NCBI RefSeq assembly: GCF_006345805.1
Contig: NC_042997.1
Span: 81,964,001-82,028,000, forward strand
Direction of reading: 5' to 3'
Source of the DNA: Octopus sinensis
Taxonomy: Eukaryota
Length of the DNA stretch: 64,000 bases
This document shows, in pieces, positions 2,651-64,000 of the stretch. A model generated the notes under the pieces. The model saw only the letters and a list, made by a program, of their open reading frames with translations. It did not search any database and was not told the DNA's origin. The position numbers were made by a program, and so were the translations under genes. Position 1 is the first letter of the stretch. The number at the start of each line of letters is the position of its first letter.

Positions 2651-2958
2651 CGTTTATATATTTGTTTTGCAAGATTCTTGATGAGAAATCGTGTGTTGAA
2701 ACAGATGTGTTTCTATTTAAATTACAAAATTTAAAATACAAAATAGCTGACCGTTAGTAAGGAAAGACACACAAATGAGAAAGAAATAAGCAAAGGACCA
2801 CTGATGAGGTCACAGAAGTATGACGAAAGTATCTGGCCAAAATAAGATTAAAATTAATGTAAAAAATAAATAAAGCTCAAGCAAATTAACACCAAATATA
2901 TAGTGCGTGTGTCATTATTGGCTAAACTGGCAAAATGACCGTTCCTAGATATAACAAC
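2651..2958 (+). mobile_element. ~300 bp TAA-flanked hammerhead cassette G, copy 1
   Basis: Homologous to 21835-22130, 22312-22620 and 56698-56992, partially to about 34930-35170 and 61205-61425. Confidence 0.75.
2795..2838 (+). ncRNA. Minimal type I hammerhead ribozyme motif
   Basis: GGACCA-CTGATGA-G-GTCACA-GAAG-TATGAC-GAAA-GTA-TC-TGGCC: core CUGANGA/GAAA/UH intact, stem II 5 of 6 pairs. Confidence 0.62.
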
Positions 2959-3186
2959 ATTATTATTATAATTATTATTATCATTATTGTTATTATTATT
3001 ATTACATTTTTTTTTTCTTCTTTCAAATTTTCTTCCATTTCTTGCCGGTCATCTTCCCGGCACCTAGGGCAAAGAAACTCATAGTATACATTGGTAGGTC
3101 ATTAAACCAAATTCAATAATTCGTTCATTTTATTTTTTTTATTTTTTTTTTTAAGTTAAATTAAAAAACATGAGCAGCAACAGTTC

Positions 3187-4569
3187 TCACAGCGACAATG
3201 ATCTTCTCAATACGTGTGATGTACCAGTTAAGACAATATTTTGCACTTCTTGCAGGGATGGTAAGCCAGGGATCATTCTCATATAATTTTCGGTTCCCTT
3301 CTTGATCATTCCTAGTGCTCCTACGTTCACTGGTATTGTAACCGCCTTGAGATGCCACATTTTCTCAATTTCAATGAGTAGGTCTTTATATTTTCTGAGC
3401 TTGTCAAACTCTTTCGCCGAGATATTATGATCACAGGGGATGCTCATGTCGATCAATAAGCAAACTTTATTGTTCTTGTCTTTCACAACAATATCTGGTT
3501 TATTGGCTTTGATGGTTCGGTCTGTTTGTACTGGAAAGTCCCACAGAATCGTTACACTTTCTCCTTCAGTTACAGCTTCAGGGTGATGATTATACCACTT
3601 GTCGGCAGTTTTGATATTGTAATGCCGACTTATTAGCCAGTGTAGATATTGGCCAACTCTGTCATGTCTTAATTTATACTCCACTGGTGCTAAGACTTTA
3701 CATCCAGAGATTAGGTGGTCCACTGTTTCAATCATGTCATTGCAGAATCGGCATTTTGGGTCTGCTCCATTTTTCATTACATTGGCCTGGTAGTTCCGGG
3801 TTAATAGGCTTTGATCTTGAGCAGCCAGGATGAAACCTTCGCTCTCTGCTTTTAGCTCTGAGATCCGTAACCACTTATGGGTTTGCTTCTGGTCGACATC
3901 AGCTTGTTTGCTACGGGCCACATATTTGCCGTGCAGAGGTTTCTCCTTCCACCTATCAGCCAATTGCTCGTGCGCTTTTTTCGTTGCCATTATTTTCACC
4001 TTCTTTGCAACAATAGTTGCCGTACTTCCCTCGGGTTGTTCAGTTTGGGTATTCTGCACGAGATCAATAGCAAATCTTTTGCTTTCCTTTATGATAGAAT
4101 GAAGATTCTTTCGTCTCTCGTGATTTTCCACGAGCTTTAGCATCCAGTCATTCGTTATTTCGAGATATTTGGCCAGTCCAATTGTGGTTGTTTTGTAAGC
4201 TAGTTCAAATTGGATCTTGCCTCGACCTCCTTGGGCTCTGGGAAGGTAAAGGCGATCTACGTCTGCCTTTGGGTGGTGCATCCTATTACAACTCAGCAGC
4301 TTGCGTATTTTCCTGTCTATATTCTTTACTTCACTCATATTCCAGTTCAACACATTGTAGCTATAAGTAACAACTGGAACTGCTAAGGAATTTATAGCTA
4401 ACACCTTGTTACGTGCATTTAGTTCAGATTTCAGGACTGCACGAACTCTCCTATAACATTCCTTCCTGATCTTCTCTTTCATGCTTGCATGCTGAATACC
4501 AGAGCCTTCATTTATCCCTAAATATTTGTATGTTTGTTCTTGCTCAAGCTCTCTTATGACTGTCAACAT
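3187..4569 (-). CDS. Family B ORF, C-terminal part: RT thumb, CCHC finger, restriction-like endonuclease (460 aa)
   Basis: YKYLG, HHPKADVDRLYLPRAQGGRG, CRFCNDMIETVDHLISGC, RHDRVG, KPDIVVKD, LIDMSIP, KYKDL. Confidence 0.9.
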   Translation of the reverse strand: MLTVIRELEQEQTYKYLGINEGSGIQHASMKEKIRKECYRRVRAVLKSELNARNKVLAINSLAVPVVTYSYNVLNWNMSEVKNIDRKIRKLLSCNRMHHPKADVDRLYLPRAQGGRGKIQFELAYKTTTIGLAKYLEITNDWMLKLVENHERRKNLHSIIKESKRFAIDLVQNTQTEQPEGSTATIVAKKVKIMATKKAHEQLADRWKEKPLHGKYVARSKQADVDQKQTHKWLRISELKAESEGFILAAQDQSLLTRNYQANVMKNGADPKCRFCNDMIETVDHLISGCKVLAPVEYKLRHDRVGQYLHWLISRHYNIKTADKWYNHHPEAVTEGESVTILWDFPVQTDRTIKANKPDIVVKDKNNKVCLLIDMSIPCDHNISAKEFDKLRKYKDLLIEIEKMWHLKAVTIPVNVGALGMIKKGTENYMRMIPGLPSLQEVQNIVLTGTSHVLRRSLSL

Positions 4570-60895: not shown

Positions 60896-61099
60896 AATTA
60901 AAATTAAAATTATTATTATTATTATTATTATTATTATTATTATTATTATTATTATTATTATGTATATTATTATTATTAGTATTATTATAATAATAATTAT
61001 TATTATTATTTTTATTACTATTATTATTATTATATATTATTATTATTATTATTATTATTATTATTATTTTTATTATTATTATTATTATTATTATTATTA
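60896..61099. repeat. (TTA)n microsatellite
   Basis: Directly visible. Confidence 0.95.
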
Positions 61100-64000
61100 A
61101 GGCGGCGTGTTTGGCACAATAGTTAGCACACCCGGCAGAATGCAAAAATAACTCGTATTACACGAGTAACCTTTAAAGTGCCTACCACTATTGGGAGTTT
61201 TAGAAAATACAAAATGGCTGACCATCAGTAAGGAGAGACACACAAATAAGAGAGAAGAAAGCAACAGATCACTAATGAGATCACAAGACTGTGACGAAAG
61301 AACTCTGGCCAAAATAAGATTAAAATTAATGTAAATAATAAATAAAGCTGAAACAAATTAACATCAAATATATAGTGCGTGTGTTTTTATTGGCTAAACA
61401 GGCAAAATGACTATTACTAAATACAATATTATTATCATTATCATTAATATTAATATTTAAGACGTAACACAGTATCCAAAATCGTGAATTTTTGATAGAA
61501 GATATTGTGTCTACCGGGGGTTTTTATTGTCGGTCACGTTACAACAAGGATCTCAGAGAGTCAGTATCTTACACAGAATGCGTGCTGTTCCAAGTAATGC
61601 CGTGTTTTGCAATATACCTAGATTGTACGGTATTTCTAAATTTTCCAGGTATTTATTCATGTTGTTTTGGTATTGAATCCAATACTCCGATGATAATTGG
61701 GACAACCTTTATATTTGACTGTCGTAGCTGCCACAACATGGCGATTTCTATTCCCAGGTCTCCGTATTTATCGATCTCTTCTCTTTCTTTCATATGTTGA
61801 TCTTGTGGTAGTGACTCCTCTGTTATTCAGTACTCTTGTTTTTCCCCCCTAAAGGTTACTTTGTCCGGCCTCCGGTACTCTAAGTCAAAGACCCAGAAGA
61901 TTTCTATTTCCCCCTTTCGTCATTTACGTTTTCTGGTGTATGTTGGTGTCAAGCACCCATTATTTCGTATCCATACTTCCGGCATTGTAGCTAGTGAAGG
62001 TCCTGCGCTACGTTGTCATGTCTGCGCTTGTACTCTTTCTGCGCAAGACGTTCACAAGCTTGTGAAAGCGAGTATGTGCGTGTGTGTATATACGTATATA
62101 TCTAGGTGGAGAAAAACTGGAACGAAGTGACGAACAGGGTAGCCAATCTCACCCAGAAATTGGTCGAGAGGAAGCTGTTCCTGAAAGGTCGAGTGAGGGG
62201 GAGAATGCGTACATCACATCGGTCACCTACTACCGCTTGACCATCGACCCTTGCCCGTTACGTTGCCTGAACAAGCTGGTCGGCATACAACTCCGATTTC
62301 TGCGGAGGGATCTCGTTCCGCTGGTAAGGTGCTCCATCTGCTGACAGCACCTTACCTTGTCGACCGGGAGGGGGCGATGGTGGTACTGCAGTGCTTTTCC
62401 GAAAAGATCTGGATTTGTAAATAAAAGCAATATTCCTGGATCCAGAAAGTAATTTAATGGTTCTAGATGTGAGCAGCAGTGACGGCGCTACCTTCAAACA
62501 GGGGAGGGCTGTCGGATTACTTCAAGTGTCTGGAGGTTTTCCTAGGAACGTCTCGAGCTTTAGTATTAGTAGGGGATTGAAACGCTGTCTTAGATAAATA
62601 TTTCGATTGCGTGGAGCTATCAGATAGGAGAGTGGGTTGCAACATCCTAACAAACCTGCTCAGATGTTTTCAACTGTCTGACAGGTATCGAGTAGATTAA
62701 CCCATATACCAGGGTTGCAGAATGGCGAAAATAATAATGGAAAACATTTTACTAGAAATAGACATCTGCTGGTTGGTGGCATGAACAAAATGAATATCCT
62801 ACAGGCGCGAAAACTGCATAAACAAAACTTTTGCGGGCAGTACTTGGATTTATGGATGCGAATGGATAGAACAAATTTACCAGATTGCTCCAAACTTCCA
62901 TGTGGCTGTGGAGGGATGAAATCCGATGTTTCACCTGTGTGGAGACACAAATCATCTCAAGGCCTTTTTCCCACAACAAAAGAGAAAAAAGAGAGTCCCG
63001 CCTTTGCCGACACCACCACCACAACCACACTCAGCAACAGCACCAGCTAATACCGCTGACCACTTCAGCTGCAAAAACAACAGTATCATTAGCTTTACCA
63101 GTAATCATAGCAGCACCGACCTCATTAACCGTAACAACAACATGAACAAGAGCAGTGAAGGCAACAGCAGCGAACAGAACAGGGAACTCACGAACATCTA
63201 AGTCTTTCACATATCAGACAACAACGAAAACAACAGCATCAGAATTACCCAATATAAGAAATTTATTATCAACAGAACAACGGCAAAAATCTCGCAAAGA
63301 GATGTTCCACTCATGTTCGTAACAGTCAGACATGTCCTGCAGCCATGGGAACGACGAAGAGCCTAAATGTCAAAAAGTTAGCAGGTCTGATAAAATAAAA
63401 GGAAATAAAATATAGCCATACCAACACAAAACCTGGCAGGTATGATGAGAGCTGGAAAATATCTTTGTGAATAAATACACAACTAACAGCTCCCCCCCCC
63501 AACAGCAGCGTCACCAGTAATGTCAACATCATTCCCATCGATACCATCACCACCACCACTATCAAAGACACAACCCTCACGAGCACAACATAATTCACAC
63601 ACACAACTCTCAGATCGCACATTCCAACACCAGCAAATGTCAAACATCATTAAATACACAGCAATAATCAAGAACAAAAAAGACCTGAAGGAACGCATAT
63701 ATAACCATACAGACAACGCAGCCCATATTTATCACATCAACAAACAACGTACCAACGCACATAACAGTTATCCTTAGGATAGTCCGTTTAAATGCACATG
63801 ATTTGGGGTCGCCTAGGAAACATAGTCATCTACTCAGCAACCTCAGATCACGAAGTGTAGATGCAGTGACTCTCAGTGAAGCTAGACTCTGACTGACAAT
63901 CGTTCATGCCGATTTTCGGTGATTTCGCACAGACAGGAGTAGGACAACAAGCCTTTTTCATGCTTCTGGGGGTTTTCCTAGGAATTCCTGTTTTAGTGGG
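61100..64000. repeat. Compound unit beta, copy 2 (runs off the window)
   Basis: Colinear with 34829-37740. Confidence 0.92.

Follow-up and report, generated by a model that had tools for sequence, protein, structure and literature searches.

Why does a hammerhead-like RNA motif recur in the TAA microsatellites of an octopod-type genome, and do the retrotransposons that share those microsatellites move it? We analyzed a 64,000-nucleotide stretch of such DNA (contig NC_042997.1, positions 81,964,001 to 82,028,000; called the window below, with positions counted from its first base), in which a non-coding cassette, here named G, includes a sequence resembling a minimal hammerhead ribozyme. The initial annotation had read G as a ribozyme-bearing non-autonomous element, akin to retrozymes or to the pseudo-long terminal repeats (pLTRs) of Penelope-like elements (PLEs), that may be mobilized by the R4/Dong-type long interspersed nuclear elements (LINEs) of the same niche. 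The explanation that we prefer, with somewhat less than even confidence, is that G is an (ATT)n-tailed retroposon resembling a short interspersed nuclear element (SINE), that it carries a relic or weak minimal hammerhead, and that the LINEs land in its tails.

Copies, modules, and ends of cassette G

A BLAST search of the window with the first copy, followed by a MAFFT alignment, gave six copies of G, each approximately 300–350 bp long and all on the + strand. They had been annotated as lying in or next to TTA runs, and all six are indeed embedded in (ATT)n arrays, with (ATT)n/(TTA)n on both sides of every copy (50–191 bp on the 5′ side and ~30–206 bp on the 3′ side). Four copies belong to one type, A: G1 (2650–2959, with (ATT)n at 2507–2649 and 2960–3004), G2 (21834–22130), G3 (22311–22619), and G6 (56697–56992). 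The remaining two, G4 (34829–35173) and G5 (61100–61427), are of type B and begin with another 5′ head. The hammerhead-like core is intact in G1, G2, and G6 and disabled in the other three.

The two types have their 3′ ~235 bp in common (78–89% identity), and their 5′ heads of ~95 bp are unrelated. G is built of modules: an exchangeable ~95-nt 5′ head that has been swapped between the subfamilies, a middle part with the hammerhead-like motif, a ~110-nt 3′ domain, and an (ATT)n tail. On the + strand the 3′ region reads …TTATTGGCTAAAC.GGCAAAATGAC…AAATAC(ATT)n. The 3′ domain is the best-conserved part of the element, as would be expected where a LINE enzyme recognizes the 3′ end. Several traits of G are those of SINEs: it is short, non-coding, and dispersed, has defined ends and a simple-repeat 3′ tail, and carries its motif internally, downstream of the head. 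Classification as a miniature inverted-repeat transposable element was considered and rejected, as no terminal inverted repeats were seen when its ends were read.

Because segmental duplications enclose two pairs of copies, the six represent only about four independent ones. A duplication of ~4 kb (18386–22326 and 53228–57201, 95–97% identity) holds G2 and its duplicate G6, and one of ~3 kb (34768–37740 and 61039–64000, 96.7% identity) holds G4 and its duplicate G5. Counted in this way, the core is intact in two of the approximately four independent copies and disabled in two. Immediately 5′ of its motif, G4 contains an internal tandem duplication of 17 bp (34962–35001, GAGAGACACACAAATAA x2.4); it is absent from the near-duplicate G5 and thus arose after the segmental duplication. 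G2 and G3 had been described as a tandem. They are adjacent, and Tandem Repeats Finder reports a period of 477 bp with 2.0 copies, but the pair is not free of spacer, with 179 bp of (ATT)n (22131–22309) between the two. We rejected the idea that they arose by local tandem duplication, because outside the motif G3 is 94% identical to G1 vs. 90% to G2.

All six copies have the same termini, at distances of ~183 nt (upstream) and ~127 nt (downstream) from the predicted cleavage site. None of the six copies in the window starts or ends at that site, and none is a 5′-truncated form beginning with UGGCC. Because the termini are fixed away from the predicted cut, cleavage does not define the G unit.

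Searches beyond the window retrieved no copy of G. When collections of metagenomes, viruses, and prokaryote genomes were scanned for conserved stretches of G and for its motif, only three chance 21-mers were obtained. Exact look-ups of three LINE reading frames of the window found no record of any of them, and the 20-kb loci of Octopus sinensis and Argonauta hians that were reached through homologous LINE proteins contain neither G, nor a TAA array, nor a hammerhead-like motif.

The hammerhead-like motif

The sequence GGACCA-CTGATGA-R-GTCACA-GAAG-TRTGRC-GAAA-GTA-TC-TGGCC, which had been annotated in three copies, is present exactly in G1 (2795–2838), G2 (21979–22022), and G6 (56840–56883), and the predicted cut follows C2833, C22017, and C56878, in agreement with the annotated positions. 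Read along G1, the motif consists of helix I (GGACCA/UGGCC), the core CUGAUGA, an extra G, helix II (GUCACA/UAUGAC), GAAA, a loop 3 of GUA, and UC. Helix I has 5 bp and one bulged A. Helix II contains one C·A mismatch in G1 and one U·G pair in G2, and is a perfect 6 bp in G6. The mutated cores are also those listed by the initial annotation. G3 (22456–22499) has CAGACGA, in which U4 is changed to A, together with a C at position 10.1. G4 (35012–35056) has CUAAUGA, with G5 changed to A, an A·C at 10.1/11.1, and a loop 3 of GAAC, and G5 (61266–61310) has the same core defect.

The three intact copies satisfy the consensus of minimal type I hammerheads (C3-U4-G5-A6-N7-G8-A9 … G12-A13-A14 … A15.1-U16.1-H17). 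They also show the hallmarks listed by Cervera and de la Peña (PMC4209133) for the minimal hammerhead ribozymes (min-HHRs) of PLEs: a 6-bp helix II, a 5-bp helix I, an unpaired base between A9 and 10.1, and G10.1–C11.1. To estimate how often such a motif would be met by chance, we used a descriptor modeled on the relaxed RNAmotif descriptor of the same authors, which combines the core boxes with a helix II of at least 4–5 bp, a helix I of at least 4–5 bp (one bulge allowed), 0–6 nt from A15.1 to U16.1, and an optional base after A9. In the window it matches the three intact G motifs only, and nothing on the minus strand. In 4 × 10^7 strand-bases of first-order Markov sequence with the composition of the window there were 4 strict and 12 loose matches, which corresponds to 0.013–0.04 expected matches per window, or ~1e-7 per base, and would mean hundreds of chance matches in a gigabase genome. 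The three matches go back to a single ancestral sequence, and the statistical support that they give is therefore moderate rather than overwhelming. Genuine min-HHRs, for their part, are reported in overwhelming numbers from metazoan genomes and are extremely abundant in those of invertebrates (PMC4209133). Taken together with the hallmarks, this abundance makes descent from a real hammerhead a likelier origin of the motif than chance.

A search with Infernal and the Rfam hammerhead models had been suggested as a check. None of Hammerhead_1, Hammerhead_3, Hammerhead_II, HH9, or HH10 gave a match, either at the gathering score over the whole window or at E ≤ 10 with segments of 330, 401, and 66 nt. 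This null is uninformative for the minimal class, because a minimal type I motif used as a control, with a palindromic CUAG loop 3 and an 8-bp helix I, was likewise missed at E ≤ 10. The control is itself a type I hammerhead-like sequence (CUGAAGA-U-GCCC-UAGU-GGGC-GAAA-CUAG-UU, positions 6525–6570 of locus L004, minus strand; ENA ERZ25066847, ctg1174) of an unrelated genome, in which a Dong-like LINE is located ~3.5 kb away.

Would such a motif be expected to cleave? Helix III is reduced to the A15.1–U16.1 pair closing GUA. The hammerheads of PLEs, newts, and axolotls compensate for a stub of this kind by means of a palindromic loop 3, through which two molecules form helix III together (PMC4209133; PMC7229834; PMC6765202). 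The loop 3 of the A-type copies is not palindromic. RNAcofold gives it a helix III self-duplex of −0.4 kcal/mol, in a register that breaks A15.1–U16.1, compared with −2.0 kcal/mol for the B-type GAAC, −6.2 kcal/mol for a hypothetical GUAC, and −8.6 kcal/mol for the CUAG of the control. The copies of the window thus have no dimer potential, and the idea that they may cleave as dimers also meets a dead core in G3, the sole adjacent partner. One hypothesis is that GUAC was the ancestral loop 3, from which each lineage differs by one change (loss of C in type A, U to A in type B); such an ancestor is as parsimonious as the alternatives.

In the best fold of the isolated G1 44-mer helices I and II form, but core positions G5–G8 pair with UAUC; the isolated G6 44-mer has a z of −2.4. 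The full-length + strand G RNA folds into a branched structure (−54.9 kcal/mol, z = −1.7, a mild gain over shuffled sequences) in which helix I is not formed, and the full-length minus strand has a z of −0.3.

Conservation gives no sign of selection on a ribozyme among the ~4 independent copies. Variable alignment columns make up 17/45 (38%) of the motif vs. 23/111 (21%) of the 3′ domain, and A-type and B-type copies are 78% identical in the motif and 79–88% identical elsewhere. The motif is therefore no better conserved than its flanks. No compensatory change was found in the helices of the six aligned copies; all changes in helix II are one-sided. On this evidence the motif of these copies would most likely be a relic, or a ribozyme of very low strength at best, and the copies probably lack activity.

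Dong-like LINEs, an octopod-type SINE, and the strand of G

The proposal that R4/Dong-type elements mobilize G can be examined through strand relations. One LINE family of the window is represented by LINE-1 (18413–21708, minus strand), a Dong-like TAA-specific element whose reverse transcriptase precedes a zinc-binding and R2-type endonuclease region. It stands for at least 8 minus-strand copies or fragments, and its sense strand has (TAA)n at both ends; the same (TAA)n ending is seen in a 56%-identical homologue from an unrelated assembly. The Dong-like LINEs of the window belong to the R2 superfamily, are homologous to the solved R2 proteins, and have no apurinic-type endonuclease domain. 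The best named matches of a LINE reading frame of the window come from Octopus sinensis (60%) and Argonauta hians (54%).

A second, divergent and degenerate Dong-like family, LINE-2, is also on the minus strand. It is present as a 5.2-kb form (29607–34777) and a 3.2-kb form (35210–38450) with identical ends, and further stretches occur from 8750 onward, at 57199–60908, and at 61460–64000. Its sense-strand 3′ end, …CTGTGTTACGTC, adjoins the (ATT)n tails of G3, G4, G5, and G6. LINE-2 has no long reading frame; the surviving protein match is to the C-terminal endonuclease region (~31% identity), and the family may itself be non-autonomous or long dead.

The annotated sharing of the TAA niche was borne out, as G copies and Dong-like LINEs with an R2-type endonuclease occupy the same (ATT)n/(TAA)n arrays. 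Mobilization was not. In tblastn searches all Dong-like matches of the window fall on the minus strand, and the hammerhead strand of G is + in 6/6 copies. When G was aligned in both orientations with the 3′ ends of the two LINEs, no significant similarity emerged. A partner that is copied by target priming from the same nick should share the orientation of the LINE and usually its 3′ end; G, read on its hammerhead strand, shares neither, and the proposed partnership is therefore contradicted.

For orientation we used an octopod-type SINE as the reference for (ATT)n-tailed retroposons. Its copies, at 8497–8749 (with a (TAT)n 3′ tail of its own), 26578–26802, 28584–28867, and 29344–29606, are all on the + strand. 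The + strand carries a B-box-like GTTCAAATCC, read directly from the sequence, and ends in a tail of …GGCAAAATTTGAAACA(ATT)n, which the SINE has as its own even outside the arrays (26578–26802). It matches an O. sinensis locus at 83%; with the matches of the LINE reading frame given above, this makes an octopod the probable host. The B-type head of G aligns with the SINE head from the first base, and so does an orphan head of type B at 681–745, with 23/30 and 28/43 identities and z = 3.4–3.9; the A-type head is unrelated to the SINE head. The orphan (AGGCGGCGAGCTGGCACAATAGG…CTCGTATTACAC) is on the + strand directly after (ATT)n and has no G core behind it, being followed by unrelated sequence and a LINE fragment, so that the B-type head module also occurs without the core. 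From these relations the sense strand of G is probably the + strand of the window.

Both the G copies and the SINE copies meet the LINEs tail to tail. The tails of 5/6 G copies and of 3/4 SINE copies directly contact the 3′ end of a minus-strand Dong-like LINE, in most cases LINE-2, whose 3′ end adjoins three SINE tails in addition to the four of G. These sites are at 2960–3004, 8717–8749, 22620–22663, 28804–28867, 29564–29606, 35174–35209, 56993–57198, and 61428–61459. The arrangement suggests that SINE-type tails serve as landing pads for TAA-specific LINEs.

There is a further, internal relation between G and LINE-2. Part of the B-type head matches a LINE-2 segment (40/42 nt), and positions 13–66 of the A-type head match another LINE-2 segment at 89%. 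Such matches suggest that the elements sharing the niche have recombined or switched templates.

Two observations on these repeats stand apart. At 534–680 the polarity of the array flips, from (ATT)n to (ATA)n/(TAA)n (~563–615) and back to (ATT)n, the only such flip in the window. Another LINE family, known from a zinc-binding reverse-transcriptase C-terminus at 6437–7870 (+) and 13650–15104 (−), has an A-rich 3′ end (…GTGGGTAATAAAGAAAAAAAGAG), is not confined to TAA arrays, and occurs in both orientations; its best matches are in Octopus sinensis and Argonauta hians.

Competing explanations, related systems, and implications

In the explanation that we prefer, G would be a short, non-coding, modular family of SINE-like retroposons of an octopod-type genome, and its copies would gather in (ATT)n/(TAA)n arrays in the same way as those of the octopod SINE of the window. 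Such (ATT)n-tailed elements would seed or extend the arrays, and Dong-like TAA-specific LINEs would then insert in them, often straight into the tails of G and of the SINE. Because the orientation of the LINEs is fixed by the repeat strand, every LINE would come to lie antisense to every G. The likeliest ancestor of the hammerhead-like module would be a genuine type I hammerhead of minimal form, like those of PLEs or retrozymes. With a helix III that is predicted to form neither within one RNA nor between two, the module would now be without visible constraint and would not set the ends of the element. It is plausible that the core of G came from a PLE without any link to Dong elements, since PLEs have an insertion bias for microsatellites (PMC8557442).

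Several points weigh against this explanation. No tRNA was found in the B-type head or in the SINE with Rfam or ARAGORN, and T runs expected to terminate RNA polymerase III occur on both strands of G. On the + strand the 5′ junction of G is exact and the 3′ junction ragged, which fits target-primed copying of a minus-sense element too. The matches of the two G heads to LINE-2 segments are in opposite relative orientations. The statistics on conservation, covariation, truncation, and orientation rest on ~4 independent copies at one locus and have almost no power. PLE-type hammerheads cleave poorly in vitro even when they are genuine (PMC4209133), which leaves room for activity in vivo despite the weak predicted folding, and master copies of G may carry a better ribozyme than the copies in the window.

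One alternative is a non-autonomous retroelement with an active ribozyme, either similar to retrozymes or descended from a PLE pLTR, that R4/Dong elements mobilize and whose hammerhead processes its transcripts, possibly as a dimer of neighboring copies. It would account for an intact core with min-HHR hallmarks in three copies where far less than one match would be expected by chance, for the adjacency of G2 and G3, and for the strict co-occurrence of G with TAA-specific LINEs; it also has precedents, as an HDV-like 5′ ribozyme is already part of Dong/R4 biology (PMC3774820; HDV, hepatitis delta virus) and metazoan retrozymes have been proposed to depend on LINEs or PLEs (PMC7229834). We nevertheless consider it quite improbable. 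The hammerhead strand is opposite to that of every Dong-like LINE in the window, neither LINE-1 nor LINE-2 has a 3′ end in common with G, and no PLE is present. The non-palindromic loop 3 leaves almost nothing to hold a dimeric helix III together, the only adjacent partner, G3, has lost U4, and the fixed ends of the unit, the lack of spacer-free tandems, and the lack of preferential conservation of the motif all speak against this alternative as well. The opposite possibility is that the motif was never a ribozyme, and that drift in an ordinary AT-rich repeat brought its A-type lineage into line with the loose minimal consensus. At the chance rate estimated above the consensus sequences of some repeat families should match by accident, and the CUAAUGA and the A·C at 10.1/11.1 of type B may mean that the ancestor never had the core. 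The absence of covariation, of a conservation excess, of helix III, and of a score from any Rfam hammerhead model can be read in the same way. This seems unlikely to us, however. The expectation for the window remains far below one, and the motif has features that the descriptor does not demand (G10.1–C11.1, a full 6-bp helix II, C17, and U7). The extreme abundance of genuine min-HHRs in invertebrates shifts the prior odds toward real descent, and the Rfam result carries no weight, because the models also missed a textbook-looking control.

A different objection concerns the strand of G. If G were a minus-sense SINE dependent on Dong-like LINEs, its hammerhead-like sequence would be antisense and without a role in the life cycle, and all G copies would share the orientation of the LINEs relative to the repeat strand. 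Read in this sense, every copy has an exact 3′ junction (…AAACGT|(AAT)n in type A and …CGCCGCCT|(TAA)n in type B) and a 5′ junction that varies over ~6 nt, the pattern that target-primed reverse transcription would leave. ACGT(C) precedes the repeat in both A-type G and LINE-2, and 4/6 G copies lie directly downstream, in the minus sense, of a LINE-2 3′ end. However, the similarity of the minus-sense 3′ region of G to the 3′ untranslated regions (UTRs) of the LINEs is not significant (z = 0.2–2.7), the minus strand has many T runs, and a variable 3′ end on the + strand is equally well explained as ordinary variation of a microsatellite tail. The alignment of the B-type head with the head of a plus-sense SINE from its first base also argues for the + strand, as do the unambiguous SINE copies, which have the same + orientation and the same tail-to-tail contact with LINE-2. 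We hold the minus-sense alternative to be doubtful. Finally, G could be a living hammerhead-bearing SINE, specialized on (ATT)n/(TAA)n arrays but inverted relative to the Dong-like LINEs, whose hammerhead processes read-through transcripts of the arrays. It might be primed from the other-strand nick of Dong endonucleases, or be copied by another, (ATT)n-tailed LINE, and its master copies would perhaps have a GUAC loop 3. A SINE with a ribozyme would then be making use, in inverted geometry, of a site-specific LINE that has an R2-type endonuclease. To this we assign only a very slight chance.

Comparison with known systems points in several directions. In its motif G comes closest to the PLE min-HHRs, with which it shares the type I topology and an almost absent helix III (Cervera and de la Peña, 2014; PMC4209133). 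Those motifs mostly occur as single dispersed copies in invertebrate genomes (PMC4209133). Unlike them, G has non-palindromic positions 15.2–16.2/loop 3 (GUA) and a bulged helix I. The suggested pLTR identity finds no further footing in the window: there is no pLTR arrangement and no PLE reading frame with reverse transcriptase and GIY-YIG, as a Pfam search of reading frames of at least 150 aa found no GIY-YIG and all reverse-transcriptase frames belong to Dong-like or other LINEs. The minimal hammerheads of PLEs have reportedly also been treated by Lunse, Weinberg, and Breaker (2016/17).

Like the metazoan non-LTR (long terminal repeat) retrozymes, which are present in molluscs among other animals, G is a ~300-bp non-coding sequence of low G+C with one type I hammerhead (PMC7229834; Li et al. 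2026, bioRxiv 10.64898/2026.07.22.740005). Retrozymes form spacer-free head-to-tail repeats of 170–400 bp, and their monomers are bounded by the cleavage sites and yield highly self-paired circular RNAs (PMC7229834; 10.64898/2026.07.22.740005). G differs in having dispersed copies separated by microsatellite, no head-to-tail array, fixed ends away from the cleavage site, and a full-length RNA that is predicted to be branched rather than rod-like (z = −1.7); we did not uphold the retrozyme assignment.

In architecture the nearest relatives are the schistosome elements Sm-alpha and Sj-alpha, short dispersed SINE-like elements with an internal type I hammerhead (PMC2770079, PMC6765202), in which a SINE/tRNA-type head is followed by the ribozyme (Ferbeyre, 1998; Laha, 2000; summarized in PMC2770079, PMC6765202). 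The Sm-alpha ribozyme is a full hammerhead with loop–loop contacts and very fast cleavage, and the tRNA origin of the element is clear (PMC2770079, PMC6765202). The motif of G, in contrast, is minimal and dead in half of the copies, its head is weakly SINE-like and only in type B, and the element is confined to (ATT)n arrays.

Among R2-derived elements there are non-autonomous forms, the SIDEs, which share the 3′ UTR of the LINE. The LINEs R2, R4, and Dong have HDV-like 5′ ribozymes, and those of Dong and R4 cut at the 5′ junction with the TAA repeats (PMC3774820). G resembles the ribozyme-bearing elements of this niche in combining a self-cleaving-type motif with confinement to the target of site-specific LINEs with an R2-type endonuclease. 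It differs from SIDEs and from the HDV-like 5′ ribozymes in that its motif is hammerhead-like, lies in the middle of the element, and is on the strand opposite to the LINEs, with which it has no end in common. A search of the 5′ end of the local Dong-like LINE with Rfam gave no HDV-like ribozyme.

The arrays hold one more repeat. A non-coding, TTA-flanked element of ~550 bp, which we call Z (GAGTGAGAGAGCAGTGCATGCC … GCCACTGCCTGCTACTTAA), is found at 1955–2506, 5083–5620, 17805–18351, and 52420–52950. At its end there are internal tandem repeats of 33 bp and 85 bp (5606–5732 and 52885–53226, the latter with 4 copies).

An active motif would add cephalopods, and a SINE-like element confined to a microsatellite, to the list of hammerhead-bearing retroposons, and would bring a second kind of ribozyme, beside the HDV-like one, into the target niche of Dong/R4 elements; that ribozymes occur in this niche is not new. 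As it stands, the window shows a minimal hammerhead consensus persisting as a passenger in a modular SINE-like repeat. It also shows that the Rfam hammerhead models are blind to the minimal class, and that comparing the strand of an element with that of a site-specific LINE is an inexpensive and decisive test of claims of LINE mobilization. The tail-to-tail arrangement of G and the SINE with the Dong-like LINEs would be a case of one transposon family creating the niche of another.

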